A stretch of 64,000 nt of DNA from NCBI GenBank assembly GCA_010909165.1, contig VJWM01000202.1, forward strand, positions 292,271-356,270, given 5' to 3'. The notes beneath the pieces are model-generated. The model was not told where the DNA came from. It did no database searches and saw only the letters and a list, made by a program, of their open reading frames with translations. Numbering within the stretch: position 1 is the stretch's first letter; every line of letters starts with the position of its first letter. Source of the stretch: Anthoceros angustus. Taxonomy: Eukaryota > Plantae > Anthocerotophyta. A program made the position numbers and the translations under genes. Positions 2,280 to 56,520 of this stretch are shown here, one piece after another.

Positions 2280-2325
2280 CATCACAAAACTGGATAACCA
2301 TGTTTTTCATGTGGAAATCATATGG
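2280..2325 (+). repeat. Left terminal inverted repeat (~46 bp, imperfect)
   Basis: First 10 bp are identical to the right TIR; shared blocks GTTTTTCAT and CATATGG at matching offsets. Confidence 0.9.
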
Positions 2326-3121
2326 CGCCACGGCCCATGCAGTCGGCCATGGAAAAAACCATATGAAAATAATATCCTCAATGGGTAAGTATTTTTATTT
2401 TTATTTCCTACTTGTTCTATATTATTTATGTTTGAGTCCTACAAAGAGCTCATATATTACTCATGAAAGGACAATATACTCATGATATAAATTTCATTCA
2501 GTGTCTATGTAGTTTAATTATCTCAATATATAGGTGCACTTATATGAAATCTCTTATGGATCTATGAAAAATAAAATAAAAAATATTTACGTCATTAAAT
2601 TTTATGTCCTTCATACCAATCTTATATGGATATTTATGAACTAAATTTATTTTTTTAAATGATTACATATTTTTATTATATGAAAATATCTAATAATATA
2701 AAAATATGATAAGTACATCCAATAAAATTCATATGTATTTTAATACCATGTATCATGTGTAAAATAATATAAAGAACATGTAGGTAGGGTTCATGCAGTC
2801 GGCCATGAAAAAAGGGCATGAAAATCATATCCCTATCAGTTTTTGATTTATGTCATTCCTTGTAAAGTCTTTGTACCCATTTGGTTTTGAGTCCTACAAA
2901 AGAACTTGTAAAATACTCATGAAGGTGCAAGTGTCCTTCTATTTTGTGTGTCATGCTAAATGTATATACTTTCTTTATCTCAATATATATGTACATTTAT
3001 ATGGAAATCTGTATGGATTTATGTGAAAATTGATATAAGCATCATACACGAATTGATATGATTTATATATGCCTTTCACAATTCCTTTATGAATATCTAG
3101 TACCTGAGTTTTAAATTTCTT

Positions 3122-3180
3122 GTATATATACATATATGCATATATATATATATACATATATATATATCGTATATATACAT
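3122..3180. repeat. Imperfect (TA)n microsatellite
   Basis: tatatatacatatatgcatatatatatatatacatatatatatat... Confidence 0.85.
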
Positions 3181-6100
3181 AATAATTAATCTTTAGTACA
3201 AATATTATGATTAAAAATACACTATATTTATAACTTTAAAATAATTATAATCATTCAACAATTACAACATCTAGCTTTTAAGCGAATCCAAGCTAGGGCT
3301 TCTTGTGCACGATTCTCCGGCTCGGGACGAGCTATCGGGACCATGATCCCTCCCCATCAATACGAACTCACAGGTCAAATTTTTCTTGCAGGTGCGCCTA
3401 ACATATACATTCAACCCATACACTACAAAGTTGAAGAGCCCCTGCAATCAGAGATGTAAGAGGCTATCATACGGGACCGGAGACTGAAAATCACACCAAG
3501 GCAGGGTGCTCTTACCATGAGACCTGCTGTGCCAATGTGAAGGCAATACAGCCAGAACAGCCGTTGATGTGGTTTCACAGAATCATGAATTCGGTTGATA
3601 GTTCCATTGAACAGTATAGCTCCCCATAGAGGTACACAGAATGTGATAGACCGTAGCACCTGGTACCAGAGTTTTGATAGTTGGCATCCATGGTTGCACA
3701 GTGGTCCTCCCACACTGCAATTGAAGAAAACCACAAAGTTTCCGTGACATTTCCTGTAGTTGTCTCTGTCCTGACCCAACACCAAGCACCAGCCGGTCCA
3801 TACCCATTTGAGCTGCAAATGCTAATAAATTGACCACTGCACTAGGAAAGATATGAAGATCACCACTAGCCTGTCCAAACTTGAAATTGCAGTCCTTCTT
3901 GGATCACCAATGCATTAGGCCACTCCCAAATGCATCTTCCAGTGCCTGAACGGCACACAAGAGAACCTTTAGATGGTCCAGAAAACTATACAGTATGGCA
4001 GATTGTCGCAGTAACATATGTCAGTCAGTGCAGGGATGACTACACCTAGCTGACATGCCGAGAATGAACAGGAGCGTACCAACTGAAGTTCAAACCGTGG
4101 GTTTCAGGACTTCCATGTCAGCTAGATTGTCTGCAAGGTAACGCCATTCTCCATTCACAAGATGGGCAATTAATGCAAACATGGCAGCCTGATGCTTCTT
4201 CTCCATGCGACAAAGCAGGCTAAAGTCCAAGTACCTGTACCAGCTAGCTAACAGTCGATGAAAATCCAGTGTGACAAGATTCAGCACGCCTCATTTTGCC
4301 ACCTACCATCGGCACGAGATGTCGCTTTGCTTCATTCTGATCCTCAACACTAGCCTGCTGACCACTCGACGATGCCCTCTGCAATTAGTTGCATGTCCCC
4401 AGGTCGTATATATACATAATAATTAATCTTTAGTACAAATATGATTAAAAATACACTATATTTATAACTTTAAAATAATTATAATCATTCAACAATTACA
4501 ACATCTAGCTTTTAAGCGAATCAAGCTAGGGCTTCTTGTGCACGATTCTCCTGGCTCGGGACGAGCTACTCGGGACCATGATCCCTCCCCATCAATACGA
4601 ACTCACAGGTCAAATTTTTCTTGCAGGGTGCGCCTAACATATACATTCAACCCATACACTACAAAGTTGAAGAGCCCCTGCAATCAGACGGATGTAAGAG
4701 GCTATCATACGGGACCGGAGACTGAAAATCACACCAAGGCAGGGTGCTCTTACCATGAGACCACAGCTGTGCCAATGTGAAGGCAATACAGCCAGAACAG
4801 CCGTTGATGTGGTTTCACAGAATCATGAATTCGGTTGATAGTTCCATTGAACAGTATAGCTCCCCATAGAGAGGTACACAGAATGTGATAGACCGTAGCA
4901 CCTGGTACCAGAGTTTTGATAGTTGGCATCCATGGTTGCACAGTGGTCCTCCCACACTGCAATTGAAGAAAACCACAAAGTTTCCATACTTCCTGTAGTT
5001 GTCTCTGTCCTGACCCAACACCAAGCACCAGCCGGTCCATACCCATTTGAGCTGCAAATGCTAATAAATTGACCACTGCACTGGAAAGATATGAAGATCA
5101 CCACTAGCCTGTCCAAACTTGAAATTCGGCAGTCCTTCTTGGATCACCAATGCATTAGGGCCACTCCAAATGCATCTTCCAGTGCCTGAACGTGCACAAG
5201 AGAACCTTTAGATGGTCCAGAAAACTATACAGTATGGCAGATTGTCGCAGTAACATATGTCAGTCAGTGCAGGGATGACTACACCTAGCTGACATGCCGA
5301 GAATGAACAGGAGCGTACCAACTGAAGTTCAAACCGGTGGGTTTCAGGACTTCCATGTCAGCTAGATTGTCTGCAAGGTAACGCCATTCTCCATTCACAA
5401 GATGGGCAATTAATGCAAACATGGCAGCCTGATGCTTCTTCCCGTGACAAAGCAGGCTAAAGTCCAAGTACCTGTACCAGCTAGCTAACAGTCGATGAAA
5501 TCCAGTCGATGACAAGATTCAGCACGCTCTCACTTTGCCACCTACCATCGGCACGAGATGTCGCTTTGCTTCATTCTGATCCTCAACACTAGCCTGCTGA
5601 CCACTCGACGAATGCCCCTCTGCAATTAGTTGCATGTCCCCAGGTCGTATATATACATAATAATTAATCTTTAGTACAAATATTATGATTAAAAATACAC
5701 TATATTTATAACTTTAAAATAATTATAATCATTCAACAATTACAACATCTAGCTTTTAAGCGAATCCAAGCTAAGGGCTTCTTGTGCACGATTCTCCCGG
5801 CTCGGGACGAGCTACTCAGGACCATGATCCCTCCCCATCAATACGAACTCACAGGTCAAATTTTTCTTGCAGGGTGCGCCTAACATATACATTCAACCCA
5901 TACACTACAAAGTTGAAGGCCCCTGCAATCAGACGGATGTAAGAGGCTATCATACGGGACCGGAGACTGAAAATCACACCAAGGCAGGGTGCTCTTACCA
6001 TGAGACCTGCTGTGCCAATGTGAAGGCAATACAGCCAGAACAGCCGTTGATGTGGTTTCACAGAATCATGAATTCGGTTGATAGTTCCATTGAACAGTAT

Positions 6101-6894
6101 AGCTCCCCATAGAGAGGTACACAGAATGTGATAGACCGTAGCACCTGGTACCAGAGTTTTGATAGTTGGCATCCATGGTTGCACAGTGGTCCTCCCACAC
6201 TGCAATTGAAGAAAACCACAAAGTTTCCACATTTCCTGTAGTTGTCTCTGTCCTGACCCAACACCAAGCACCAGCCGGTCCATACCCATTTGAGCTGCAA
6301 ATGCTAATAAATTGACCACTGCACTGGGAAAGATATGAAGATCACCACTAGCCTGTCCAAACTTGAAATTCAGCAGTCCTTCTTGGATCACCATGCATTA
6401 GGCCACTCCCAAATGCATCTTCCAGTGCCTGAACGTGCACACAAAAGAACCTTTAGATGGTCCAGAAAACTATACAGTATGGCAGATTGTCGCAGTAACA
6501 TATGTCAGTCAGTGCAGGGATGACTACACCTAGCTGACATGCCGAGAATGAACAGGAGCGTACCAACTGAAGTTCAAACCGGTGGGTTTCAGGACTTCCA
6601 TGTCAGCTAGATTGTCTGCAAGGTAACGCCATTCTCCACTCACAAGATGGGCAATTAATGCAAACATGGCAGCCTGATGCTTTCTCCATGTGACAAAGCA
6701 GGCTGAAAGTCCAAGTACCTGTACCAGCTAGCTAACAGTCGATGAAATCCAGTGTATTATAAGATTCAGCACGCTCTCATTTTGCCACCTACCATCGGCA
6801 CGAGATGTCGCTTTGCTTCATTCTGATCCTCAACACTAGCCTGCTGACCACTCGACGAATGCCCCTCTGCAATTAGTTGCATGTCCCCAGGTCG
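3170..6894. repeat. Tandem triplication of a ~1.24-kb unit (3170-4406, 4407-5647, 5648-6894)
   Basis: Near-identical units; junction aggtcg|tatatatacataataatt repeated; copies differ mostly by 1-2 bp indels. Confidence 0.95.
5852..6294 (-). pseudogene. GCR1: Captured fragment of a GCR1-like G-protein-coupled receptor (also in the other two tandem units)
   Basis: Spliced pieces SNGYGPAGAWCWVRTETTTG | VLRSITFCVPLWGAILFNG-TINRIHDSVKPHQRLFWLYCLHIGTAGLM | GAFNFVVYGLNVYVRRTLQEKFDL resemble plant GCR1 (WCW...TFYAPLWGAILYNG...INRIHDF...FWL...GTAALMGLFNSIAYG, recalled from memory). Confidence 0.85.
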
Positions 6895-7215
6895 ATGACC
6901 TTGCACCCATTCCATAGTCAGGACCCTCTTGGTAGTCGTAGGAGGCAGGGTACGAGGAACCACGATGTACTTCAAGTGAGCACGTGCTTCCTACAAGGAA
7001 AAACCACCAATTGTGATCCAATCAACCAGAGACCAAGCAATAAAGCTGCCAGAAGGACGGCTACATGTAGCTCTGGAGCAACTGCTGCTTGGACAATCCA
7101 AAAACTTCACGAGAAAACAGTTCGATCCATACTCAAAATTCTTCCACATTTGTGGCCTCGACGTTGTAGTCAAGCTCCCATGCAGACCCCGTCCAAGCTC
7201 ATCAGCCAAACCTAA
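6345..7215 (-). pseudogene. Captured fragment of an ABC1/UbiB atypical kinase (3' part also in the other two tandem units)
   Basis: ADELGRGL-GELDYNVEATN | YIVVPRTLPPTTTKRVLTMEWVQG | YLDFSLLCRMEKKHQAAMFALIAHLVNGEW | ALEDAFG...FKFGQ with introns. The exon expected to carry HADPHPGN is absent, and DFG is DFS. Confidence 0.85.
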
Positions 7216-7331
7216 CCCTGCCGCAACAAAACCACCGCCAATTCAACAAACAGGACGAACACCAAAATGATCTTACAAAACAGAACAACAAAGCCGCACG
7301 CATCATCCTTTCAGAATGAAGCCAGTCTCGG

Positions 7332-7412
7332 CAAGTAAACTCCGTCGGACAGCACCAGCCGAAAGCGCTCCTGCGAGGTGGAATTGCTCCCGATCGCCTT
7401 GATGTCAATCAC
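7332..7412 (-). pseudogene. Captured micro-fragment of the RPA70/RPA1 N-terminal OB domain
   Basis: VIDIKAIGSNSTSQERFRLVLSDGVYL matches the RPA1 N-terminal ER(F/Y)RL(V/L)LSDG motif. Confidence 0.72.
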
Positions 7413-7849
7413 CGGTGCCGCCATCGCCGATCTTGCCGCACCTGGCCGAGATTTCTCCCTATGCTGCTACCCTTGCTGGAGTCCGACCCGGCGGCGCTCA
7501 CCGCAGCCGAGCAATATGTGTTCATACACTGAAATCTGCAATCATACAGTGTACATGGCAACGCAGCCAGCATGCCCCCCCTTCCCTCCCGCAATTCCCA
7601 AACCCCATCCCAAAGCCTACCCGGGAATCCAAATCCGTAGCAGTGAAACATCTATCACAGGCAAGTACCTTGTGATTACATTTGAAACGACCACACAACA
7701 ACCAGCATGGCACCTAGTGCCAGCAGTGGACTTGCCATCTAAACCTCCAAAAGAACATTTAGGAAGCCTTCCAGGACTGTAAAAGAACATTTAGGAAGCC
7801 TTCCAGGACTGTAAAAGAATACACGTTCAATCTGGCAGTTTATCATGTT

Positions 7850-9195
7850 TTACGATTCTACACGAATAGTGATCTTCGTTAGACTCGGCATCCAAGCGAT
7901 GATCTTTTCTTCCAGGGCATCCATATCCTCACGATGTTCTTCCATTTGTGTTGGTATGAGAGTCTTCCCCTCCATCGCCAGGTCCAACTACAAGGAAACA
8001 ACAATAACATCAGCTACTACCAGTTATCATTTAAAACAACAGGGAGGAAAGTTATCGCATAGAACTGAACAACATGGAGGCACCTTACCACATAAAACAG
8101 AAACTTTGCTTGATCCATGTTCATTTCTATGACATCGTCGGCGGAGAAGTGCATGGCTGCTCTTAAGGCAGCAATAACTGCATCTGAGCCCCAGGGGTCC
8201 AACACACCTGTATCAGCATCCAAAACTTCCCTCCAACTATCATCTGCTCTAAGATCAGCCAGTTTTTCTCTCCAATACTGCAAATTTTCGTCCTTAGCAG
8301 GTTTCGGACATTCCAGCTGCTGATAGAAGGTGGTCCTCAAAAGCTTTGTGAAAAAAGACCGCTTGCTCCTAGTGGCGTCAAGGACTTTCCTCCTTAACGC
8401 TCCTCTCCAGTTCTTATCAAACTCTGATTGGTCGCTCTCGGTTACTCCAAACGCAAGAATTAATGCTTGCTTGAGGCAAGCCTCACTTGGATAAAAAGTC
8501 TTCTCCAACATGATGTCAGTCAGAATGTTGGAAAGTACCTCAGCAAAAACCTTGTTAGTCATATACTCCGGCTTCGCTAGAGGGGAAGCCTTTAATGCTA
8601 ATTCAGCAGTTCGTTGTAAAGCTTGCATCATCGAATTCTGCTTCTTCAGCTCATCCCGCAACATTGCAATTTCAATTCGGTCAACATTTGTGGTAATTAC
8701 CTCCTTCTCCTTTGCCTTGTGATGCTTCCGACTCTCAGATCTATAACTACCATTCTCCAACGTCTCCGCATCCTTTCCGTATCTCCGAGAGAAGGAAGTT
8801 GGCCGATATGCCACCTGCTGCTTCCTTCCTCCATAAAAGACTTCTCCAGTGAAATCGTTCACTATTCTATTCGACTCTTTCAAAGGAAAGAGATCTTGCA
8901 CATGCTTTGTTTGTGAAGGAGGACTCGGATCCTTCCGAGAAGATCCAATCGGCTGAGTAAGGGGATCAGGCCGATCTTCGGCTTGCTGCTTCCTTCCTAC
9001 AGGACCGGCTTCTTTTGCAGAATTCGATGACCGTCCAACTTGTTGTTCCCTTGTTCGATTCGCATCTTTCGAGGGAGAGAGATGAACGGTCTCCGAAGCT
9101 TGCTCCTCTCCCCTGCTCGAGTCCTTCATTTTCTTGCTTGGTGGACCAGACGCAACAGGTGGCAATCCAGGCTTCCTTCGACTTCCTCTCTGCAT
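7850..9195 (-). CDS. Transposon companion gene of unknown function, 2 exons (9195-8089, 7987-7850), ~414 aa
   Basis: Long open frame; TG|GTAAGG donor and TTGTAG acceptor join in phase 0 and end at TAA. Disordered N-terminus, likely coiled coil (IEIAMLRDELKKQNSMMQALQRTAE), helical C-terminus. Confidence 0.75.
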
Positions 9196-9669
9196 ATCTG
9201 TGAAGGCGGAAAAGGACATAAGATCATTACAAGATGTAGCACGAGGACATTTACAGGAAATCAAATGTGAGACATACCGGAAAATTTATAACGCAACAAG
9301 GCGCAACACACCGGCGTCAGCTGGCGGATCAATTCGCACGAAATGATGTTCAGCCGGCTGCACGCCGCTGAACACCAACACGCTGTAGCAGATGTCCACA
9401 CGCCGTAGCAGACTGACTGCAGCTGTCCAGTCGATTGGTTAGAAACTGCGCTCAAACGCTAAGGCAGAATGGACAGGGAAACAGAAAATTGTCACGGGAA
9501 AACTTCATTAAGGTAGGGTAATGCAATTTCATGCACCCCTGCCCGAACTACCCCTGCCCCCGGCGTTGATCCTTAACAAAATAGATGTGCAAAACGAATC
9601 CACAAAGCACAAGAAAGCATACCCATGCTCCTTTTGAGAGATAACAACTTCCATTCACGAGAATGACTG

Positions 9670-9825
9670 AGAAGGTTTGCAAACCGACGCAGTCCCACAT
9701 GCCTGCCTGAGCATAAAAGGTTCCCATGAGCACAAAGGCGGAAGGGTGTTGTGGTTCCAGAGCCCTTGCGCAATTGAACATACACCTTCCCAGCTGCACA
9801 TTGTTATGTTTCCAGCAAGCATTGC
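9670..9825 (-). pseudogene. Captured PLS-PPR C-terminal E-motif fragment
   Basis: NACWKHNNVQLGRCMFNCARALEPQHPSAFVLMGTFYAQAGMWD resembles the PPR E domain (ACxxHGNVELG...YVLMSNIYAxAGxW). Confidence 0.8.
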
Positions 9826-10031
9826 TGGAAGCAGGTGCTTTTCTAAAGCAAGCAGGTGCTTTTCTAAAGCATTTCACCTTAACAATGACATCTCCGAATT
9901 GTTATACACAGCTGAGACACTTTCATGATGAATGCAAGTCAGGCCCACCAATTAACCATTGTCATGGGAACTTACAACAAACCAATCCCAATGCAGACCA
10001 AGGGTGGTAACCTAGATCAAACCTGTCCACA

Positions 10032-13000
10032 TCAAAATTTATACTTGTTTATGAACCACCTATTTCTAGCATTCCAATTTGGCACGAGGTGATGTGCCCT
10101 AAGAATGCTGGCTGTCTCCACTACTAAATATCCAGTGCATCCACGAGTAGCATCAGCCCATGCTAATTCCTTACACTTTGACAATCTACTTAATGATGAA
10201 GCTGGTAACTCCTTGTACAGTTTCACAAAAGCTAAATCAAGTTTAGAGGCTGATCTATCTTCATCTTCCACATCCAGTTGAAATAGTAGACGTAACTGCC
10301 CATACCAGGTTTGCTCTAGTTGAGCTTCTCCCTCCATTTGGATACTGACATCAGAATACCATGGCCTTCTATGGAAATTGTACGTTGCACGGAGGTACAT
10401 TGGCCAATCCCCTAATCTATCTCCAGGGCCAGCAGCAACAGCAAGAGCTCCCTTGGTCATCAACGCTCTCCCCTACAAGTACATGTTGTCACCAAAAGGA
10501 TCACTTATTATACCAGCTTGTCCTCGCAACAACAAAAATATTGCAAACTGCTGAATGTAGTAAACTATGAACAAACCTGTTGACGGGTTAAATGCCAGTC
10601 ATTGAGATAAATCTGAACTTGCGACACCAAATGTTGTTGAAGCTCAGGTTGGGCTTCAAATAAGCGGGCAACCTGCACAGGCAAGTTGACAGTTGTACTT
10701 GCTAATAGCCATTTCCATTTGATGCGTACACTATGCCCACAAAGCTTTCTTTTCCCCGTTCGCACTGCCTACAAACATTTAAACAAAAAAAGGTCAAAAC
10801 TTGGGGAAGAGTCTGCAATACGCATGTACAGAAAGCTAACTAACCGGAAGCTCAAAGCCATGCCAAGATGTTTCAGCCTCAACTTAAACTAGTACCTCAT
10901 CCAAAGGGGTGACCCTCTCAACTTTAGGCTCAAAGCCTTCCATGTTTTCTGCCTCGCTTCTTAATGCCTCCAACCGTTTATGATGTTGCACAATCTGATC
11001 AGTAAATCTTCGCCTATTGCTCGCGCGATATGGCATCTTCATGAGCATAATATGCATGTGTTCATACATATTTGCACTGTACTCCCATGGTAGCCCGGAG
11101 CGTCGAATGCAATCTGAAAAGTGTGTCATTGCATGCACTTTGACAGTATCAAAGTTTGATGCTTGAAAACCGCCCAAAATACTCTTCATGCTGGTGACAG
11201 CACTGTGACATTGACATGGCAACAGAACTATGTGATATACTCTAGGCTACCAAACTGTCATCAAAAGCCTACTAGGTAGCACAAAATTACTAATGTGATT
11301 TTGATTCAGACCTAAAAATGACATCATTGCAACACAATACAAATGCTGAACAAATATAAAGCTGCAAACTTGTACCTAGACATCTGATCCTCCATTTGTT
11401 GTAGCGTCTCTTCATTGTGCACTCCGCTTCGACAAGCTAGCTTGTACCAATCCAAAAATTTGACAATTACCTGGATAACACCAGGAGAAAAAACTCCAGG
11501 CATGCAAAGTACCAACACTTGCATGACTGCTCTGTGTTCGAAGGCAGCAAAATTTGCATTGGAGATGAAGTAACCATGGCTGTTGTTCCCTGGGATACGA
11601 AATGCTGAATATCGATGTTGAGTCTGAAGGACCCGCAATCGTTGATCCAGTACCTCAAGAGGCTTTTGCGTTAAGCACAAGCCTGCCGCAGCAACTCCTC
11701 GCAAAGCTGCAACCAGCATTTTAGCAAGTCCCAAGTCTGATTCATGGAGAATCTCAACTTGAATTGCTCGAAAGCAATTACCGAGCTCAGTGTCACCTCC
11801 ATTAAATCCTAGTAGGGCACACTGAAGGACAAGAAGTTCAGGAACCATCACAACTTGATGTAAGAAAAACACTAAACCTATCATTACTCCAGATTTGGTA
11901 CCTTAACAGGATGAACTGAAGATTCTGAGGAGAGTCGATTCGCAGCTGCTACCTGCCCAACATCAATCATCTCGGCAAGCTGATTCTGCAGAACTATCAT
12001 ACTTGCTTCGGTCCGCCATTCATGCTTCAAATCGACTCTACTCAAAAGATTTCGGGGACACAAACAAACGCTGCAAGGGAAAGCACATTTATTTGTGTCG
12101 AATGTGCAACTGACCTGCAAAAACATCACTCCTTCAATCATATATACAACATGAAAAAGAAAGTATTGCAGGCATGAAAACTGTGATCACATCAGTACTA
12201 GTAGCCAGTCTTGAGGATAATAGAATTTACTTTGCATCCTTCAGGATGATCTGCTATGTAAGAATAGAGCATAGGGAAAACCCACTGGTGACAACCAAAT
12301 GGATCCTTCAAGTGCAATCCTTTAAAACTCGCCTCCTTCAGTGGTTGCAGTATCAGCTCCAAACATTGCTGAAAAATCTCCAGTTTCTTCAATCTTGAAT
12401 TGGAAGCATGGAGAACCACAGGATCATTACTACCAATTGTTGGCAAAATCGCTAGAAGCGCATGTCCATGCTCCAAAGACCTCGTCGCACATGCAATATT
12501 GCCCAATGACATCACAAGCGGATATCCACTAGTTCTTTGATCATGTGAGAGGCTTGTAGCATCTGAGTACAAAATGATAGGTGCTATTACAGCCCCTTCA
12601 CAACCTACATGTTCCTGCACCCAGACGAAAATAAACGAATTTAATATGAGCATGCAGCATACTCATAGACTTCATAATGATCTCAAAGTACCTCCATTTT
12701 TCGCCACCACAAACCGGTTTGCGCAGTTGTGTACTCTTCAGTTCCGGAAACCTCTGGTTTCAACACAAATTCCCTCCTATTCTTTCGTGCCGAAAAGAGC
12801 TTTCCAAGAACACCAACTGGATCTCTGTACCTTAGTTTTAGGTCACTTTCTCCTGGACAAACTAGAACTTCCTTCCACTCGTATCCATCTTCTGTTTTAA
12901 CTTGGGATGTGCGGATCAACTCTTTCTCGTAAGCCTTAAACTCTTGAAAACTCCTATACCTCAATTCTTCCAATCTAAACGAAGGGTGAAATAGCATAGC

Positions 13001-13498
13001 AAACAACGAGGTAATATCCTTTTGTGATAGCCCTGCAGAGTTCCTGCAATGCCGAATAAAGTGAGCAAGATGAAAGCTAGAATCAAAATCCTTGGTCTGC
13101 CCCATCCATATGTCTTCGTTGCCAGTGCCTCCACAGCTGGTACTACCACTCCTATTGCCATCTGACTCACCTCCAGAGCTAGTACTACCACTCCTATTGC
13201 CATCTGACTCACCTCCAGAGCTCGTATTACGATGCCTACCACCATCCGACTCGCCTGTAGAGTTGCTAGTACCACCACTTCTATTGCCATCTGATTCTTG
13301 AGTATCAACCTGCATCTGATCATCTTCTGCACCTTGCCAATCATCCAAGCTTGCCCCTCGAGGAGAAGCTGGGATAGGACTGGTCCTTTGAGCAGCTTTT
13401 TGTAAACGTCGACACCTTGAATTTCTGCTCTGATGGCTGCCTAGACTTCCTCGATGGACAAATCCTGTTGCCCCACAATACTCACAATCAAATGCCAT
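10032..13498 (-). CDS. Plavaka-type DDE transposase, 7 exons, ~929 aa, apparently intact
   Basis: Exons 13498-12692, 12614-12231, 12114-11902, 11821-11376, 11202-10896, 10768-10577, 10472-10032 all have GT-AG ends and join in frame (2790 nt). Motifs: N-terminal CxxC...H zinc finger, PIILYSDAT, YPLVMSLGNI, YIADHPE, CxxCxCP, EILHESDLG, KVHAMTHF...YEHMHIMLMKMPYRASN, C-terminal RAHHLVP...WFINKY. Confidence 0.9.
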
Positions 13499-13589
13499 CT
13501 TGGATGGGCCAAGATGGATAAGCCTTAACCTTGGATGAGTGCAGGATCGGAAATGGCCCTCGTTACTGCTGTTACGGTGAGCACGTTAT

Positions 13590-13678
13590 GTCAGCAGGGG
13601 AAGCTTTTTGAGGTCGTTCAAGACCTAGAATCTTGTCAGCAGGGGAAGCTTTTTGAGGTCATTCAAGACCTAGAATCT
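13590..13678. repeat. ~44-bp tandem duplication upstream of the transposase ATG
   Basis: tgtcagcaggggaagctttttgaggtc(g/a)ttcaagacctagaatct occurs twice. Confidence 0.9.
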
Positions 13679-13699
13679 CTGGCGCAGACAGAGTCTGCC

Positions 13700-14080
13700 A
13701 TTTCCTAGTCTCTAATGTACACTGTGCTGAAACTGTGTAGCAGCTAAGAAGGATTTGGTTGTGGGGCATCGAGTTCATGATATCACTGCCAAACTTGGGC
13801 AGGAGTCGAGTGCCTTCTCGGGAACCATATCTTGCGCATGAATGCATGCGAAGGTAGGCTGCAGGAGACCATGGACGTGTTCACCAGGGTGGGCGAACCA
13901 AACGTCTTCATGTGGTTTTCCGTAATCTCTGCACATGCCAAGCACGGAAAACCGAAGGAGGCCATACAACTCTACCACGACAAGTGTATGTAGGTCCGAG
14001 GTGAAGGTGAATGGTCACGTCTTTGTAGCTGCCCTTCAGGCTTGCGCACTTGCCGCCGACTTGGAATCTGGTAGACGATG
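13700..14080 (+). pseudogene. Captured PLS-class PPR fragment
   Basis: LGNHILRMNACEGRLQETMDVF...NVFMWFSVISAHAKHGKPKEAIQLY...VKVNGHVFVAALQACALAADLESGR, frameshifted. Confidence 0.85.
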
Positions 14081-14660
14081 GTCTCCACATTCCGCCTCCT
14101 CCCGCACTTTCCATTGTGAAACCCAACCGTGAGCTATGCCGATGCAAGCGACGCCAAGCCCAGCAACAGGAGGATCGTGAAGCAAGTCCATCTCACCTTG
14201 CTCCTGCGCAGCAAAACCAGGAGTGAGAATCGTGGATCACTCCAAGCCCCACTAGAAGAAGAGAGACACAGTAGAGAGCTTCGCAAAACTTACGAGACGG
14301 ATGCAGTCGCGTGCAGCTAGGGCAGGAACGTCCGCGCAGGACACAAGCCCAGGGCACTTACTTTCGCCAGACGCTTTGATCGTGTCAATCACGTCGAATC
14401 CCAGAGCAAGTTTTGTTGGGAAGAGCGTCCTTCTCACTGTCAGCAGTATCCAGGAGGACGGAGGCATCGCACCCCTACACGAAATTGTGTGCGGCAGGCG
14501 AGACTGATTAGGATTACTGTACACGAGCATCATGCCTACAATCTGCTCGCAATCCAGACTGATTCGCCAGCGGCTCACCTGGACGAAGCAGTGGTGGAAG
14601 TGGTGCCGAATCAAAGAAGCACAGATCGTTCAGTCGGCCAGGTACGCCTTCTTCACCCCC
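14075..14660 (-). pseudogene. Captured class III peroxidase fragments with introns
   Basis: ASLIRHHFHHCFVQ | GCDASVLLD...EKDALPNK...GFDVIDTIKASGESKCPGLVSCADVPALAARDCIRL | then a signal-peptide piece ILLLLGLASLASA*LTVGFHNGKCG. Introns 14578-14475 and 14293-14204 lie at the usual peroxidase positions. Confidence 0.9.
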
Positions 14661-14930
14661 TGCCAGCAAGGGCTTGGACATGAGGCGCTTGTTCTGCATG
14701 GACAAATGGAGCAGGAGGGCCTCAATTTGACAAACAATTTTACTTTTGCTTGCCTTCTCAATGCAACCACTGGTGCCATATAGAGGGGCAGGCAGGTGCA
14801 CTCAGAGACTGTCAAAAGAGGACTGCTGGAAAATGTCGTGTTGGGCAACTGTCTGGTGGACATGTATGCCTTTTACTTGCCTTCTGAAGGCCTGTGCAAC
14901 CACTGGTGCGATACAGAGGGGCAGGAACCC
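14660..14930 (+). pseudogene. Captured PLS-class PPR fragment
   Basis: CQQGLGHEALVLHGQMEQEG...FTFACLL...RGRQVHSETVKRGLLENVVLGNCLVDMYA, with an internal partial duplication (FTCLLKACATTGAIQRGR). Confidence 0.85.
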
Positions 14931-16140
14931 CTACGATGAGGTGAGCGGGAGCCCCTTGGTAAAAATCCTTGTACGCACACCAATCTGTTAGGTGCCCTTG
15001 AACCCTCCTGCCGGAGTTCGAGAAGCGAGGAGTCATGGAGCTGAGTTTCCGGGAAGTGAGCGCGCTGCCTACAAGGAAGCTTTATAACATTACTTATCGA
15101 ATACCATATAAATTCAATATAATAAAATATAATACCTACATGTAAATCACGTCAGATTCCTATTATTTAAGTATAAAATGATAAAATAATTATTATTATA
15201 TAATTTTAATAACATCATAAATATAATATTTTTATACATATATTTATCGATATCTTATAATATTCACGTTAAACCGTGGCAAACACTCATTGCCTAGCCA
15301 TAAAAACATTAGAAGATCGATACATCCTCAATATCTATATTACATCTAGAGAAATTTGATGATCATATATATATATAGAATATCAATAATATTTATAAGA
15401 TATCTAAAAAATATAAATATAAATATAAATACTATAAATATTAATAAACAGTATACTATATACATATAAAATATTATAGGACAACATGTGTAACTTCCAT
15501 ATGAAAAATACTCTATATTAAAAATATAATCATACGTATTTTATCTTGATAATATGGATAAAATAATTGTATGAAAAAAATTATGATTACCTTATAACAA
15601 ACACGTCTCAAGAAGAATGTTATTTCATGTAAGAACCTTAAAACATCCATAGAGGTATGAACATATGGTAAATACTTGGATTAAAAAGAAAAATTTTATT
15701 AACCCTATATCAGAAAAATTATCATGTTAGTATGAACTATATGCATATACAAGCCATGTGAATTTTGATATCTTAATCTAAGAGCAAAACTTATACATCA
15801 AAATATATGCGATGTATACTTTTACACATATATAATATTCAATATACTAATATTCAGTTACTCATTGTTACTTGTGACATGCATATGGACTCCATATAAA
15901 ATGTTACTATATGTAAACTACATGATACCATCACATAATATGATATCAGACTCATATAAAACACATCATGACTTAAGAAGTGTATTTATGCATGCAATTC
16001 ATATTATCGCATACAAATGCCATATCCTATAAATATAGAGTCATTATAAAATAATCTCACATTAGAACTATAGGAAAAGTATATTATAATTATAAACTCA
16101 AATAATATGGAGATTGTATGTTTTTAATATACTGTGGATT

Positions 16141-16186
16141 CCATATGGTCACGGTATGAAAAACGTGGCCCTTCAATTTTGTGATG
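16141..16186 (-). repeat. Right terminal inverted repeat (~46 bp, imperfect)
   Basis: ccatatggtcacggtatgaaaaacgtggcccttcaattttgtgatg is the inverted counterpart of 2280-2325. Confidence 0.9.
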
Positions 16187-18495
16187 TTCGCACGGATAAT
16201 GGTACTGAGTTTGTGAACACTGCTTTCGACGCATTTCTCCAGGAGCATGGAATCCAGCCACCGATCGTGCCCTACACCCAACATGAGTTGGCGTAAAAAT
16301 CGGACTTTGCTCTCAATGACTCAGATGCTCTTGTGGGCCTAGCTTACCTCGGGACTTCGGCGAGGCCACATCGTCACCGCCACCTATATCCTCAGCAGTG
16401 CTTACCTGTCACTGGCAAGACTCCTTTTGAAGTCTTGGCGTAAGCCTAGTCTCCTTCATCTTCGGCGTTTTCGGTTCCGAGGCCTATGCTTATATCCCTG
16501 CCGAGAAGTGGAAGAAATTGGACAAGGGGGCTTTCCTCTTTCTGGTACATTAAGCTTGACCAAAACATAAGTTATATGATGCTCGCTCTCGATTACCCTT
16601 GCGTAGTGTTACTTTTATCAGGCCGTCCCAACTGTTGATTCATCCCCTCTTGGCGCTCTTGCGCTCGGAAGAGTTGGGCCGGTGGGCGACGACTCGATGT
16701 CTGTGGTATCCCCAAGATGATGAGCCTCTGCTTTGTACTGTTGTGCCACCCATGGCTCCTACCGCTCGGAGGATCTCGCATCGAGGGAAGGCAGTCAATC
16801 GAGGATGATAGCCATAATAATTCGACAATGTTGTCCCAGTGAACATCTGGATGATATTGACTTGGCCAAATCCGACTCCTCCGAACTTGCGCAACTGAGC
16901 ATGTGGCGAACCGAACACGAACTTCGCGTTCCACTAGGCACGGACCTCCTCACGAGGGATGGAAGGAGCCTCCATATGCCTCTATTGGTGGAGGACTTTT
17001 GGAGCTATAGTCGACATTTTACGGCTCTTGAGCCTCGCTCCTACAAAGAGGCCATCTCATGCAGCGGTCTCAAGTGGAAGGTGGCCGCCGAGGGCGAATA
17101 TCAATCTCTTATTAAAAAGCGAGACTTGGGTCCTCACGGATGCACCACAAGGGAAAGCCGATATCTTGTAAGTGGGTGTTCAAGCTAAAATTAAATGCAA
17201 AGGGGAAATTGCTAGATACAAAGCTAGACTTGTAGCAAGAGGCTTCACACAGGTTGAAGGCTTGGATTACCGAGACCTTCTACTGTAGTGCGAACACGAT
17301 CCATTAGGATCATACTTGCTTTACTGAGCACTTGGATCTACAAATGGGCGTGTCTGACCTTCCTCTCACGACACTTGATGAAGAGATTTATATGATGCGA
17401 CTGAGGATACCGGGACAAGCGTTATCTGGCAAAGTCCTAAAACTCACTGAAATGCATATATGGGCTAAAACAAAGTGGAAGGTATGGTATATTACCATCC
17501 ACATTTACTTACTTGAGATTGGTTTTGTTCAAAGCACGGTGACTCAGCGTATATCGCCTTAGTGAGTGTTGATTTTGTTCTTGGCCTTATGCGTGGGCGG
17601 CGTAATTCTATAACAAGCAGTCAAGGCATTAGCAGAGTTAAGGATATCTTGAGGACCCGATATGACATGAAGGATATCGGGGGCTCGGATACTGAATCTG
17701 AATACTTAGGAACGGACATGAAGGTGCAGTAATAATCCATCAACACAAGTACATAGGAGAAATCCTGCGTAAGTTTAAAATGGATCAAGCCAGCTGCGTC
17801 CACTCCATATCGGCGAGAATGAAGCTTACGATGGCGATGTCGCGATCGAGAGGAGATCAAAGACATATACGCTATTCCCTATAGGCCTGTAGGCGATCTC
17901 ATATTTATTTACAAAGCTGGACGGGCGGATATCCAATATCTTGGTTACCGTCACAGTTTACGGCGACAGGAAAAGCCCTTTGGGTTGCGATCAAGCGTGT
18001 GTTCGAGATATTTGAAAGAAAACATATGCGGGCTTATTCTCTGAGCGATGGGTAAAATGCTTACTGGAAGGATTCACGGACGTGGGCATCCGATAGTGAT
18101 TCGAAGAAAAGTCTCTCAACCTCGCTTCTTCCTCTCTTGATCAAGCTGGTCTTGTAAAAGCAAACATCCATAGCACTCTCCTCCCAGGAGGCGGTACAAA
18201 TCACTTAGATGCTTCCAAGGAGGCGGTGGGGCCTTGACTTCCTCAAGGACCTTGACCGAGCGGATGGCACCTACAAAGTTACATTGTGACAATATGCATT
18301 GTGGCAAATCCTAGATTTCATGCACGTACTAAACATATTGAAATTGACATCACTCGTCGGGGATGTGGTCGAGAGGTGGTTAAAGTGGACTACGTCCATC
18401 TGAGAGGACAACGTGCGAGACATCCTCAAAGGGCTTGCCAAAACACAAGCACTATACATCTTGAGGGTCTTGGGTTGGATTACTACGCCGCTTGA
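16187..18495 (+). pseudogene. copia integrase C-terminal part, RT and RNase H (frameshifted)
   Basis: RTDNGTEF, EPRSYKEA, KWVFKLK, YKARLVARGF, HARTKHIEID. Confidence 0.9.
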
Positions 18496-39370: not shown

Positions 39371-42846
<3,476 letters not shown>

Positions 42847-42858
42847 GGCTCTTCCAGT

Positions 42859-45800
42859 GGATGCTCGAGCGCTCACGGAAAGTGATGCGTGCACATCCGT
42901 TCAATTCGGTGTTGTTCAATGATGTTTGTAGGTGTTCTTTTGCTAGCTGTGAAGATGGGTTACTCATCGCTTGACCTCATAAAAAACATTTTGGAAGACT
43001 TGGTTATTCATTGACTAGCACAAAACCACAATGAAACGGAAAAACTATAAATAAATAGCTTGATATAAATAACAAGGATAATAATGTTTTATTTTTATTA
43101 AAACTTAAAAGCAGAATGTCAAAATGTCTTTAAGAACAAGAAAAGAACGGATATCACCATCTTTTAGTGAACAATCTTATTTGATGATGATCGAGAGTTA
43201 TCATGAGCTTTTTGATACGTTATCGCGATAGATTGCCTTGAGGCCTATATATGGGGTAAGTTGCAATCTTGAACAAATTAGCTTGCCTTGTTGTGGGTTT
43301 TACATCTCCGTGTCTCACTACATCTTGGGTTGTTAGGCTTTCCCGCCACTACCATGGCTCTTGTGAAAATGTCCATCATGTTGAAGACGATTTTGCTCAT
43401 GATGGTCTTTCTCTTGGGCTTTGAGGGCATAATGTTTGGAGGTGCTACTACCAAGGACTTGCACGTGGACTATGAGTTCGCTCCGATGCGAATGTGGTGG
43501 CTATGTGCGCCTGGATCCGATCATATATTTCACCTTATCCAACCGCCGTTGTTGTTCATATTTGGGTGGTTGGGACCCAAAGGCATGTGCCAAGTTATGA
43601 CTCACATTATTCAGGACCGCAAGGATGTATGATTACATCACGGGTTGCAATTTTGACGAAGCTCAACATTGTTGAAGACAGTGGACGGAAAAAGTTGACA
43701 CGAGCACTCTTGCCATGGAGCTTTTATGTTGAGGTGCACTTTTGGTCCTAATAGTTGGATCTCATGGATAGATGTTCAATGCGTAGTTCTAAGTGATTTG
43801 GTTGTATGTAGGCGGATGTAGCTTGTTGGGTAGAGGAAGGAAAAAGAGTTGACGTGGTATTCTTGCCATGGAACTTTGATGTTGGGATCTACTTTTAAAG
43901 TAGTAGGGAGTTCTCATCCCGATTATAAATGAAAATGTTTTTCATTTAAAGGTTTTAAATGGTCGTGATCTCTTTGTTGATTCTAATCCCGTATGGAGCT
44001 GCCACAAGGTGTCTCTCCGGAAAGGGGTTATTCGCCATTAAAGGGTTTGGGTTCCTAAAGGCCAAAACGACCTTCAAAACGGGCCAAACGCATCATCTTA
44101 AAACCACTCTTTAGAGATGTCCAAAAAGACATTGACCATGTTATTTTCTCGCCATGAACACTTACCGACAGGTTTAAGCCAAGAAGGTTCGCAAATTTCA
44201 TCTTCACAAGGAAGGATTTCAAGGATTTATATGTGCCGGAATTCTAAACACCTCTTCGAAGCCAAGATTTCTAGCAGTTGAACAAGAGGCAAACCAAACC
44301 AAACCACCCAACAAAGCCAACGCCCGCAACAAGAACCAACATGCAAAAGAAGCAACCCCAAGCCCAAATAGCAACACCGGACGTCCGAATTGTGAGGACA
44401 TCAAGCGGCTGATGTGGCCATCTCGAGAGGGACAAACTAGGACTCTAGAAAACAAAGACCACACGCCGTCTAGTGCAATGTACAGGATCTCCATTATTAG
44501 AGTGAAAAGAGGAAGGAAATGGGGCAATGCGCCTGAGGTTCGGCGCGACATGCCGAGTGAAGCCTCGCCAAGGACGCTCGCGCATTTCTGGAGTCCCCAA
44601 CTTGCCGCATCCAACGATGGAAGTGGTGTATTCGAGACCCCAATCTTGCCGGTGTCCATGATGGAAGTGTTGAGTGGATCGCGGATGTCCCATGTATTTG
44701 TATATGTATTATGTCTATCCGATAGAAGAATATGTATGGCGGCAGATAGACCGACAATATAAGAACTCCAAAGTCCAGCTCGGGTTGGATCAAGATAGGA
44801 TGGGTGTTTGTTTTGGTAGTTTGAAAACTTTGTAAGAACTCCACACAAGCAACTTGGGGGATCAATACTAGATGGGTGTTGATTTTAGTGGTTTGAAAAA
44901 TTTGTAAATCATCCGATCTAGGTTTAAAGTATGGAATATTGGTTTTGAAAATCATTTGTTGGTTGACGTTATGTTCATACATTCGCTTTGTATACACATT
45001 TAAAACCTTTTCTTACTCTATGTGCCCCGACCTACCTACGACTTGGCCTAGACCTTTTTATTGTTTAAATGTCCGCTAATCCGAGTTTGATGCGTGTATA
45101 GATGCATGCGCCTTGGTTTCTAGATGAGCTACATTTTCCAAAATTTGACATGTAATGGTGGTTTCGATGGCCAACCTTTGAATAATACAATGTTTCACAA
45201 TGTTTTACAGAAGTAAGAAAATAAAGATAATTGATGATCCGCCTTCAAGAATGAAAGCGTGTCGGATGTTGTCGAACACAAGCGTAAGAGAGCATATGCC
45301 ACCACGAGCCCTAGTGAGAGCCATGAGTATGTGAAGAAAGAGAGTTGGTCGCCCTAGCCGAGGATTTTGACCAAATGGTCGACTCAAGATTTTAGTGAGG
45401 CTATGAAGGAGGACCCTATACCCATTGTGACGCCCAGCACTGCAGCCTAGGGTGTTCGAGACGAACCATAGAGCTTCGCCAAGAGATTTTGAATTTAAGA
45501 TCTAACTTGCACCATGTGCCACCGTGGGTGGACTAGTAAGGTTGAAAGCGACAAGGAGAAATGTAAGCCCCAAGAGTTCGGGTCAAGAAGCGTTGAGGAG
45601 GCATGGCCATCCTTTAAGACCTTGCCCGATTCTCGCTCATGGGCCTAGAGCAGCAACTCCAAGTGTGGCTTGTCTCGCATGGAGGGGCAGTCGATGGTGT
45701 GCCCGCATCGTGGATTTCTGATGATGGGGTTTGAAAAGAACATTGATGTGAGTGTCGCTGGAGGCAAGTGTGCACAGTGCAACTGAACGAAAGTGTTTGC

Positions 45801-47957
45801 GCACAAGTATCGGCGCAATCCTCTCCAAACCCGTGCACCATTCTTTGGAGTATAAGTGCGCCGCGTCTGCACTCCCGCTCTTTAGAGCATGAGCGCCAAT
45901 ATCCACAGATCTTCTTTTGTATCCGCTAAGTGTATGGGTCTAGTTCTCTTAATCCACTTTAATTGGCAAAATTTGACGTGTTGCTTCACAAAGGGGTTTT
46001 GAGACAAACCCCTTCCGGGAGAGACACAAAGCAAAGTGCTCATGTCACAAAGCAATACGGTAGAACGTACTCCAAAGCATGCACCAGCCACGAATAACAA
46101 GTCCCATGTGATAATCCGCTGGTCTCGCCATATGCTTGTCCACGCAAGGCGATGCGGCATTGTTTTAGGGTTGCTCCCATACCGTGTCCCAGACGCCTGG
46201 TGAAACTGGTGAGGAGTCGGACTAGCACAAGGAGCATTTAAGTTCCGTGACCCCAAGCTTCCACAAGGCTATTCACACCGTACGCTTGATCGATTACAAG
46301 TTCAGGTAGGGATGTCATGCTCAAACGCACAAGAGTTGACGCTCACGCATCCACCAACCTCAAGCTTGTCGAGAAAAGCATACAAGAATGTAACGCTAGC
46401 TAGGGGCGGAGTGGTGTAGCACCCGCCACTTGACCACGTGGCCATCGTGACGAAGGTCCCAAAGGAGAGAAGACCGCCACAAGATTCGCCGATAACATGT
46501 CCCTTGCCCTCAAGGACATTTAAAGAGGAAGGTTCCCTACTAGTATACAAACGAACATGAACGAACATGTAGCCCCCAAGGCCTTCACAGAGGTATATTG
46601 CCACACATAAATACAAGACAACGGATGAGGAATGTGACGAGAGATGAAGAAAATTGAATCGAAAATGCTTCGATAGAGAAAATTAAGAATAGAAAAATGC
46701 TTGAATAGAGAAAATTAAGAATAGGAAATGCTTTGATAGAGAAAATTAAGAACATCACATCTTTTACACTAGGTGGTCTTGCTTAAGTTTTTTGGGCAAT
46801 TTTCTTAAAAGACGGTTATTTACATCGAGATGCTATCATAACATAAAGTTCTATGATATGAATGCGATCAACTTTTTCCCCACTCTCCAACAATCTTGCG
46901 ATTCATCTAACTCTTATTCCTCTAAGTCATACATCCGGTCAAGGGAACTATGTTGGCATGTTATAACTTTGCACGTCATACATTTGCTCTTCACATGATA
47001 CAAATTATAGACACAATGGCTAGTAGTCGAACGTGCACACATTTGATTGTATTATGTGCATTGACCCGCCACATTTGCATCAACACATTCCTCATTGTCT
47101 CTCAGTAGTGTGTGCTTCTTGCAGACCAAATTATGCGAGGAGGCGCCAGCACATAATAATATATGAGATGGTAGTTGACCAAGTCTCGGACATGTGTGTG
47201 CGCTTGTCAGATTACGGGCTTGGCTCAACTTATAATCGATGCTAGTGGGCTTGGAAAGATTGGTGTTATTATCCCATCTCCTAACCCTAAAAGAAGATTG
47301 AGAATCGTCATGAGCACATGAGCCATATGAGTGGATGAAAAGCTCAAGACACCTAGAATGAAGTTTGACAAAGCGAATCAAGTAGCACAACGGGAGAAAC
47401 CACAAGGTTATTTAAGGTTGAGCTATTGGTCTGACGATGTAATTTACTCTAGAACAAATCCAAGACTTGCATAGAGAAATTACTATAGGCTCGCCACCAT
47501 CGAGATCAATTTTCTTAAAGCATGATTAATATATATGTTTTCCACCCAAAACAATAAGATTGTGGATTCTCTTTTAGGGAATTTGGTTTTCATTGCATAG
47601 CTGGAGTTCCAACCCTATACCACACACGTCGACCTTTGGCGGATCAAATGCTTCTTCAATACCCGCCAAATCGATCCACCGGATGCTCGGCGTCACGAAA
47701 GTGATGCGTACATCCGTTCAATTTGTGTTGTTCAACGATGTTTGTAGGTGTTCTTTTGCTACCTGAAGATGGGTTACTCATCGTTGACTGCATAAAAACA
47801 TTTTGGAAGACTTGGTTATTCATTGACTAGCACAAAACCACAATGAAACGGAAAAACTATAAATAAATAGCTTGATATAAATAACAAGGATAATAATTTT
47901 TTATTTTTATTAAAACTTAAAAGCAGAATGTCAAAATGTCTTTAAGAACAAGAAAAG
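42859..47957. mobile_element. ~5.1-kb unclassified insertion with ~280-bp direct terminal repeats (42859-43145, 47681-47957)
   Basis: Direct repeats lack TG...CA ends; flanked by a duplicated host segment; no recognisable coding domain; internal short repeats. Confidence 0.7.
46665..46752. repeat. ~32-bp tandem repeat, about 3 copies
   Basis: aatgctt...atagagaaaattaagaa repeated. Confidence 0.85.
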
Positions 47958-48151
47958 CCGTTCTGAGACTCTGCTCCCCTCGCTTAACATTCCAGAAATC
48001 TCTTAGTCCCCCAGTCCTATCGAATCGCTTGTAAAACTCAGGATTGCTAGATGAGGACTCCGTGCCGGCCGCGGACGGCGCAACACGATTCGCGACACCT
48101 TGAGCGGCCCTGATATGCGGTGGCACGTAGGGCATGGCTCTTCCAGTGGAT
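47954..48151 (-). pseudogene. Duplicate of the helicase exon-1 5' end (copy of 42664-42862)
   Basis: Near-identical ~198 bp including the ATG (48135); the frame terminates inside the insertion. Confidence 0.92.
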
Positions 48152-54400: not shown

Positions 54401-56520
54401 ATTCAGGCGTGTGTGTTGAGGTGGAGTTGTGGCGGACGAGTTGAGGAGGCGCTAGAGTCGTGGGAGCGAAGGAGGGCGTCGTTAAACTGTTCCGGTAGTC
54501 TTGGAGAAATCCGGCGGGGTTTGTGGGAAGGTCCAGGTGGGCTGGTCAGGAGCGAGTTGTGGAGGGCACACACTTAGGGTTGTGGAGCCGGACCCAACTG
54601 ATGAAGTCCGTTCGGGCGATAGGTACATGGAGCTCGAGGCGGAATAAGCGAGACCATTCCTTGGGAGCGGACTCCTTCCTACAACGACACGGATTGTGCT
54701 TGGCGCCATCGGCCAAGTCGCCACATTTTGGGCGCCGTTGCGAATGGTATTGTTGTGTGCACGAGTTAGTAGGTAGGAGTAGGATGCCAGTTGCGGTTGT
54801 GGATGGGTGTAATGGTCGGGCGGTTTGTGGAGTATCTGAGTAGGGAGGATGCATAGGGCCGGGGCCGGGGGTCGAATCTAGCGGGGGCATGCTCAAGGGA
54901 GAAAGAAGATGGGCAGGCGGCTGGGAGGCGGCACATCAACCTCGGAGGAGGAGGACTCATCCTCAGCGGAGGATGAATCTTGGTAAAAAGGTTCCCAATG
55001 TTGCTGGACTTCTTGACACGAGGAGGTAGTAAAAGGTAGAAGGGGGCGTCAAGCGGAAGAAGCGGAGTATTGCAGGGTGTTGGCGGGCCATGTGAGATGA
55101 GAAGGGGTATGTGAGTGCCAAATCGATGTCAGTACTCTTGGCGACTGTCTTGGCTTGTTTTGTTTTGGGTGTTCTTTGTTAAGAGGGATAGGGAGGAGTT
55201 AGCCAATAAGGCCATTTCGGCGGATTGCACTAGTGCAATCCCTAGACCCTCCGGTGGAGGCGGTCAGAGCCAGGTGGTGGTCCGTCCGGGCGGTGGGAGG
55301 TGGTCCCGTCAGGCGAGGTCGGAGTGGTCTCCGGGCGAGTCCCGGAGGTGGTCCGTCCGGCGAGGTCCGGCGGGTGGTCGTCCGGAGGTCAGAGTGGTCC
55401 GTCAGGCGGTCCGTGAGTGGTCCGTCCGCGGTCAAGCCGGTGGTCCGTCGGCGGTCCGGGTGGGTGGTCCGTCCTTGAGGAGTGGAGTGCAGTAGGGTGG
55501 TTTAGTTTGGTGGGCATCGCTGGCATGGATCTCTTGTTTGGCGGGGAAGCGGTGGTGCAAGAAGTCCGGTGTGATGATGAGCTACGTCCGTGTTACCACG
55601 ACCAGTTAGGGTACATACATAGCGGGTTAGGATACATACATAGGCAGGTTAGGGTATGGGAGTATATAGGAAGGCTCGGCCCAAGACGAGACTATCCCGG
55701 TACCATCTTCGCCCGGTGCTCTTGCCTTCCGTGCTCGAGGAGCGGAGTGAGTTCCGCCACCGTGCAGGATTAATTGGTGGTAGAGGGATGTGTTGAGCTC
55801 GTGACGAGCCCGCCAACACGCTTGATGGGTGCACGGACTCGAGCCTGTGGAGGTGCTCATGGTGATTTCGCGTAGACTAACCTTGAGGTCTGAACGGAGG
55901 CTGGGGATGCAGCAAGCCACTCTCCGCAAACGTGAAGCCGAGGATTAGGAGGCGCTGGGGTGACTGGGCGAAGCCATCCTTGAGGCCGCTGAACGGGAGG
56001 TGGGGGATGCAGTCTGCAAGCCACTTCTCCGCAGTAACGGAAGTGGAGGATTAGGAGGCGCTTGGGGTGACGCGGAAGCCATCCTGAGGTCACGGGAACG
56101 AGGCTGGGGGTAGGTCGCAGCTACGCAGAACGGAAGCAGAAGGGCAAAGGCGGGGTGAATACATCGCGTGTTGGTGTTGTGACTACTAGCCGGAAATGGA
56201 TAAGGGAGAAGGGTCGTACGGGCGTGTGTGTTGAGGTGGAGTTGTGGCCGACAGAGTTGAGGAGCGCCGCTAGAGCACGATCGACGAGGAACGCGCGTTA
56301 AACCTGCTCCGAATCGGAGAAACCGGCTTTGTGGAAGGTCCGGTGGCCACCGTCCGACGAGTTGTGGAGGGCACACACTTAGGGTTGTGGAGCCACGGAC
56401 CCAACATGATGAAGTCCGCTGCGAGGGTAGAGCTCAGCATTAAGCACGAGACCATTCCTTGGGAACGGACCTTCCTACAACGACACGGATTGTGGCGCGC
56501 CGGCCACTGGCATCGCGCCA
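51471..56520. repeat. G-rich tandem array, ~1.82-kb unit, about 2.8 copies (starts 51471, 53286, 55110)
   Basis: Each unit begins tgtg(g)agtgccaaatc(c)gatgtc and contains GGTCCGTCCGG microrepeats, gttagg(g/a)tacatacatag repeats and ~80-bp gaagccacttctcc repeats. Confidence 0.93.

Follow-up and report, generated by a model that had tools for sequence, protein, structure and literature searches.

It is recognised that exon shuffling can proceed through the uptake of gene fragments by DNA transposons, a process reported chiefly from flowering plants, in non-autonomous MULE, CACTA, hAT, PIF and Helitron elements. Here we describe a probable DNA transposon of the Plavaka lineage that carries pieces of five host gene families. 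It lies in a stretch of 64,000 nucleotides from Anthoceros angustus (Anthocerotophyta; contig VJWM01000202.1, positions 292,271 to 356,270), referred to below as the window, and all coordinates are those of the window. Capture of host-gene fragments by Plavaka was not found described in the literature that mentions Plavaka, as judged largely by titles. The present copy would add the Plavaka lineage, and a seed-free land plant, to the known range of fragment capture.

Pack-CACTA and other Pack-TYPE elements of flowering plants (Catoni 2019, PMC6379663; Gisby and Catoni 2022, PMC8903248) are similar to this element in being class II transposons whose terminal inverted repeats (TIRs), along with a target-site duplication (TSD), surround pieces of several unlinked host genes together with their introns. 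By definition, Pack-TYPE elements are non-autonomous (PMC8903248), whereas the copy examined here encodes an intact, transcribed transposase (13498-10032); the superfamily and the plant group differ as well. Because the Pack-TYPE class is non-autonomous, the element does not strictly belong to it. The label 'Pack-Plavaka', proposed in a preliminary description of this locus, suits the host-gene fragments enclosed by TIRs and a TSD but does not suit the intact transposase. The soybean CACTA-related element (Zabala and Vodkin 2007, as cited in PMC13317346) likewise contains pieces of several host genes with usable splice sites. Spliced chimeric transcripts of the captured exons were reported for it, according to the title of the soybean paper, whereas no such transcript could be assigned to the present copy.

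PlavakaB transposons of Agaricomycotina fungi are distinguished by 5'-CATCA..TGATG-3' termini and target duplications of 2-3 bp (Kojima 2025, PMC12730594), and some of their families carry an extra gene (PMC12730594). The Anthoceros element shares with them the Plavaka-domain transposase, the termini and the short TSD. It differs in that its host is a land plant, its extra gene is an orphan rather than a TET/JBP dioxygenase, and it holds dead host-gene fragments, which are not described in that study. Plavaka elements are also found in red algae, where those of Bostrychia reach 17-19 kb and carry cargo beyond the transposase (10.1101/2025.02.11.637652). In Bostrychia the cargo comprises whole accessory genes, PAG1-3, kept as a conserved cassette, whereas the host genes carried here are partial and decayed. 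The Spirogyra genome study (PMC13519894) reported candidate Plavaka elements from streptophyte algae and from a moss, and, having reported the moss candidate, inferred that Plavaka was lost in land plants. Judged by their sequences, the present copy and a protein of the liverwort Calypogeia fissa indicate that Plavaka persists in further seed-free land plants, which bears on this published inference of loss.

The ends of the element were located with an inverted-repeat search of the first 20 kb of the window, in which the longest pair had 46-nt arms at 2280-2325 (plus strand) and 16141-16186 (minus strand). The arms are 74% complementary and perfect over the outermost 10 nt. The 10-mer CATCACAAAA at their tips has exactly two exact occurrences in the 64-kb window, one per end and in inverted orientation: the left TIR starts with CATCACAAAA at 2280 and the right TIR closes with TTTTGTGATG at 16186. 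The element spans 2280-16186 (13,907 bp) and is bordered by a 2-bp TSD, TT, read directly at 2278-2279 and 16187-16188. Up to the left TT the flank reads ...VPLKVL, and from the right TT it reads RTDNGTEF...; the two are consecutive in one integrase frame and occupy positions 5-64 (left) and 71-94 (right) of the Pfam rve profile. As a TSD is present and the flanks are consecutive in a single integrase domain, the data support insertion of the whole 13.9 kb, or at least of its ends, in a single piece into the integrase gene of a decayed Ty1/copia element. Both the termini and the TSD length agree with PlavakaB. Judged by these features, the locus very probably represents a complete Plavaka-lineage DNA transposon whose termini and TSD are of PlavakaB type.

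The preliminary description had placed the TIRs at 3170 and 14930, and no inverted repeat was found at either position: at 3167 a tandem array begins after a (TA)n run, and 14930 falls within a PPR piece. Its broader claim, that one transposase-encoding element carries host-gene cargo, agrees with the PF18759 match, the cargo homologies and the TSD set out here. The TIRs are followed inward by A+T-rich subterminal regions at 2326-3166, which has internal direct repeats and includes the (TA)n run (3123-3166), and at 15060-16140. The host site (1-2279 and 16189 to about 20000) is a decayed Ty1/copia retrotransposon whose integrase core is interrupted by the element. A copia-type gag (DUF4219 and Retrotran_gag_2) lies upstream of the element at 620-844, and the copia integrase has a frameshift immediately ahead of the point of interruption.

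The transposase gene occupies 9745-13498 on the minus strand, with seven coding exons from 13498 to 10032. The Plavaka domain (PF18759) was recognised in the exon frame at 12198-12653(-) with an E value of 9e-26 and 91 bits, against a cut-off of 26.3. An exhaustive protein search with this exon returned 737 relatives, and even the closest were just 53% identical, namely an 840-aa protein of the liverwort C. fissa, followed by Closterium proteins. When the C. fissa protein was used in tblastn, residues 96-840 aligned in six colinear blocks running from 13087 to 10149. Homology searches were run exon by exon, and exons were joined only for the frame and conserved-residue tests.

Contigs from two public runs of one sample were aligned to 5645-11644. 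Contigs of one run (X1) were spliced and those of the other (X2) were unspliced, so we treated the runs as RNA-like and DNA-like, respectively. A spliced RNA-like contig of 2748 nt over the transposase gene had zero differences from the window, ended at 9745, and skipped three introns (11375-11203, 10895-10769 and 10576-10473), each with GT..AG borders on the minus strand. Introns at 12691-12615, 12230-12115 and 11901-11822 were predicted. Removal of the three RNA-supported and three predicted introns leaves an uninterrupted frame of 929 codons that starts at 13498, reaches its stop at 10032 and aligns to C. fissa residues 95-837. Among 22 columns conserved across 47 long homologues, 21 are retained, including the invariant aspartates; by this alignment the retained residues comprise D287, D391, C414, H489, E659 and H662. 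Scoring of the splice junctions by local alignment gave no discrimination, and the RNA joints and the open-frame test were used instead. Because the 929-codon frame is open, conserved residues are kept and the spliced RNA contigs are identical to this copy, the element looks autonomous, as had been proposed, and is probably able to move itself.

A 42-bp (14-codon) tandem repeat of about four copies lies within transposase exon 1 at 13128-13298(-), and the RNA contig of the transposase probably breaks there. A perfect 45-bp repeat, present twice, lies just upstream of the start codon at 13589-13678. In the DNA-like run, diverged look-alike contigs covered the 3' untranslated region and last exon of the transposase gene (9445-10244) and not the rest of the gene; this segment may be a part retained by deletion derivatives.

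The second transposon gene, open reading frame 2 (ORF2), occupies 7790-9457 on the minus strand. It is covered by an RNA-like contig of 1487 nt, running from 9457 to 7790, that has zero differences from the window over ORF2 and skips two introns (9277-9198 and 8088-7988), with a 414-aa frame from 9195 to 7850. No homologue was detected in a collection of 5.8 billion proteins, from which proteins of the host species are apparently absent. ORF2 is an expressed, spliced orphan companion gene of the transposon.

The left cargo contains a tandem triplication of a 1.24-kb unit on the minus strand at 3167-6894 (units 3167-4403, 4404-5644 and 5645-6894), an array that was left unmentioned in the preliminary description. 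The units are 97% identical by BLASTN, and each contains 130 bp of A+T-rich sequence, one GCR1 fragment and the 3' portion of an ABC1K fragment. Divergence between units is 1.7-2.2% in substitutions plus 10-18 indel events, and is star-like, with about 20 private changes per unit.

The GCR1 fragment, which derives from a 7TM receptor of Dicty_CAR type, lies at 5855-6308(-) in the third unit, and the same piece recurs at 3376-3826 and 4609-5047. A 182-aa frame at 5852-6397(-) matched GCR1-type proteins (7tm_2 and Dicty_CAR) of Marchantia paleacea and Sphagnum with an E value of 3e-11, while a Pfam scan of this frame gave no match and the protein atlas gave weak 7TM leads only. By tblastn, every unit holds amino acids of about 127-172 and 226-278 of the 310-aa Marchantia protein and lacks 173-225. 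The fragment retains a 76-nt GT..AG intron (5998-5923), which is skipped by RNA contigs. The fragment of the ABC1 atypical kinase (ABC1K) at 6380-7209(-) comprises several exons, and its 3' part lies within the tandem unit. The ABC1 domain (PF03109) was detected at 6769-6990(-) with an E value of 2e-6 and 27.5 bits, against a gathering score of 22.9. ABC1K retains GT..AG introns at 7132-6991 and 6563-6429, whose joints in RNA contigs are canonical, and contigs have a loose end at 7209. The RPA70 N-terminal-domain (RPA70N) fragment lies at 7223-7684(-), with approximate borders and a recognisable part at 7332-7418. The three best protein-atlas clusters for this piece were all Rep-A_N, with weak scores of 0.77-0.79; contigs are about 90% alike over 7300-7684 and have loose ends at 7340, 7585 and 7630. 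Comparison of the 51-aa RPA70 piece and the 74-aa ABC1K piece with PDB sequences yielded nothing useful, the queries being too short. RPA70 is the least secure of the five cargo homologies.

The right cargo consists of a class III peroxidase fragment between PPR pieces. PPR fragment A (13781-14190, plus strand) holds about three PLS-like motifs, is frameshifted, and matched PPR (E 2.4e-5, 13781-13990) and PPR_2 (E 3e-5). The peroxidase fragment at 14190-14640(-) contains the end of exon 1, intron 1, exon 2 and the donor of intron 2. Its match to PF00141 had an E value of 1.9e-11, or 7.8e-13 when the frame was taken from stop to stop, and chains of plant class III peroxidases in the PDB were matched with an E value of 1e-12. 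Read along the minus strand, HFHHCFVQ is followed by an intron, GTGAGC...TGTAG, then by GCDASVLLD...AARD...RL and the donor GTAAGT. Intron 1 is 104 nt long (14578-14475), exon 2 spans 14474-14294 with one 1-nt frameshift, and the intron 2 donor is at 14293; a decayed piece of exon 3 may also be present. PPR fragments B and C (14640-14990, plus strand) are two partly redundant PLS-like stretches, with the motifs TF.CLL.A..TGAI.RGR...LVDMYA and ...TF..LL.AC...GA...GR..H read directly. A Pfam scan of 76 frames across both cargo regions revealed no sixth gene family.

The homologies named in the preliminary description (GCR1, ABC1K, RPA70, three PPR pieces and peroxidase) thus all hold. So do its statements that several fragments keep introns, as GCR1, ABC1K and peroxidase do with GT..AG introns, and that most fragments share the strand of the transposon genes (GCR1, ABC1K, RPA70N and peroxidase on the minus strand, the PPR pieces on the plus strand). 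Because introns are retained in these three fragments, capture was from genomic DNA, in agreement with the DNA-level uptake suggested earlier. The cargo pieces are short (0.3-0.9 kb), partial, internally deleted and frameshifted. We are largely confident that the cargo consists of dead genomic-DNA copies acquired by transduplication, and of neither retrocopies nor working genes. The mosaic by itself suggests that capture was serial.

Contigs similar to the left cargo were examined for sources and relatives. Over 5845-7684 both runs yielded many short contigs that were 80-99% alike. In both runs, loose ends at 6084 and 6089 fall exactly at the GCR1 deletion point and decode on the minus strand as VYFQVIRMI and AFVLLVSWT; these match GAVYFQVIRML... 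and ...LILIASWTF in Marchantia, beside the GCR1 part absent from the element. As the loose ends continue into the missing coding part, a fuller GCR1 copy is present and expressed in the sample, and the element holds a deletion derivative of such a gene, which is consistent with the fuller copy being the donor. In the DNA-like run, 93 of the 132 aligned contigs were less than 99% alike, and all but one of the listed variant places lie within 5889-7612. The listed DNA-like contigs over 7786-11426 had no base differences and small indels only (2-7 per contig), which are probably errors of run X2 and not of the assembly, since the RNA contigs match the window perfectly. These results suggest that the left cargo has many diverged relatives and the transposon genes do not. 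A rare autonomous element accompanied by commoner cargo-bearing derivatives would produce such a contig pattern.

As the preliminary description suggested, the co-oriented RPA70N, ABC1K and GCR1 exons might instead be functional, either as an expressed chimeric gene or as the origin of small RNAs acting on the source genes. Four of the five fragments lie on the transposon-gene strand with splice sites preserved, and spliced RNA contigs have joints at the splice sites retained in ABC1K and GCR1. Yet there are more than 20 listed diagnostic places at which none of the RNA contigs over the cargo agrees with this copy, and some of these contigs run into GCR1 sequence that the element lacks; for both reasons we assign the cargo-region RNA contigs to other loci, although contigs drop rare variants, so that missing copy-specific letters are weak evidence. 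The contigs of the transposase and ORF2 end at 9745 and 7790, before the cargo, and among the contigs of both runs over 5645-11644 no RNA contig links the cargo of this copy to the transposon genes. The fragments themselves contain stops, frameshifts and deletions. Therefore, we consider functional cargo very unlikely, and decayed copies remain the preferred reading.

A different objection concerns timing, namely that the cargo joined this copy only after its landing, through nested insertion of other repeats that carried fragments, or through local rearrangement and filler DNA at breaks within the resident element. Such a block could be a separate repeat family, given that look-alikes of the left cargo far outnumber those of the transposon genes, and the position of the array beside a (TA)n run would fit local instability. 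A search for an inverted-repeat pair around either cargo block, marking nested elements, found none, however, nor is either block bracketed by a duplication, and both are mosaics of unrelated genes rather than one unit. A triplication younger than the insertion is also hard to fit to units that have diverged by about 2% with many indels beside 4 kb of unbroken transposon coding sequence. Like decay would break such a coding sequence, yet both transposon genes are open, so the triplication probably predates the last transposition and moved along with the element. Late arrival of the cargo is thus unlikely. A partial assembly artefact, in the form of a false join or a false tandem expansion from repeated cargo sequence, is suggested by the many cargo look-alikes (80-99% identity), by several listed places at which no DNA-like contig carries the letter of this copy, and by the many small indels between tandem units. 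Absent letters carry little weight here as well, for the reason given above; the ends correspond to one another, and both flanks fit a single interrupted integrase domain. The assembly is accurate over the transposon genes, because RNA contigs match 2.8 kb of them without difference. We regard such an artefact as extremely improbable, and a single insertion of a cargo-bearing Plavaka element remains our interpretation.

Several observations weigh against this interpretation or its parts. The Rep-A_N match (PF04057) at 7314-7466(-) has an E value of 1.4e-5 and 25.5 bits, below the gathering score of 26.7, and the PPR_2 match to the B and C pieces at 14508-14780(+) is weak (E 0.025) and also below the Pfam gathering score. 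Three of the six transposase introns are predictions, and no transposition event, excision footprint or insertion polymorphism was observed. A source gene is shown for GCR1 only. The cargo was read in one copy only, and the look-alike contigs are not tied to Plavaka elements. Word depth was about 4 for the listed transposon-gene contigs and 21 for one listed cargo look-alike, a comparison that serves as a lead only, as contig depth is not copy number; at such low depth, the transposon genes give no indication that the autonomous form was amplified recently.

We propose the following history for the locus. The element, with two minus-strand transcription units that are both spliced and expressed, would have inserted into the decayed Ty1/copia integrase gene. 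Between its genes and the A+T-rich subterminal regions it carries two mosaics of host DNA, RPA70N with ABC1K and GCR1 on the left and PPR, peroxidase and PPR on the right, and the ABC1K and GCR1 part of the left mosaic is tripled in tandem. Uptake may have taken several events, in which templates were switched or filler was synthesised while excision gaps were repaired, or in which neighbouring copies were excised aberrantly. The triplication and the rest of the cargo would already have been aboard at the last transposition, and the left cargo may be common to a larger set of diverged, probably non-autonomous relatives.

A more speculative possibility, which we regard as somewhat doubtful, is that this expressed single-copy element is the live master of a Plavaka family in a bryophyte-grade plant, and that the deletion derivatives of this element, the true 'Pack-Plavaka' elements, amplified a chimeric block of RPA70N-ABC1K-GCR1 exons to tens of copies. 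If so, a gene-shuffling system would be currently active in a transposon lineage thought to have been lost from land plants. With both ends defined in full and an intact, transcribed transposase, the copy could serve as a reference element for annotation of the family, and for testing the mobility of the autonomous element and its cargo-bearing relatives.

Two further sets of repeats were observed elsewhere in the window. A pair at 42664-43145 and 47675-48151 is 94-99% identical, with the order of its parts swapped. At 51471-56506 there are about three tandem copies of a unit of about 1.8 kb, with 77-81% identity and internal sub-repeats of about 100 bp.

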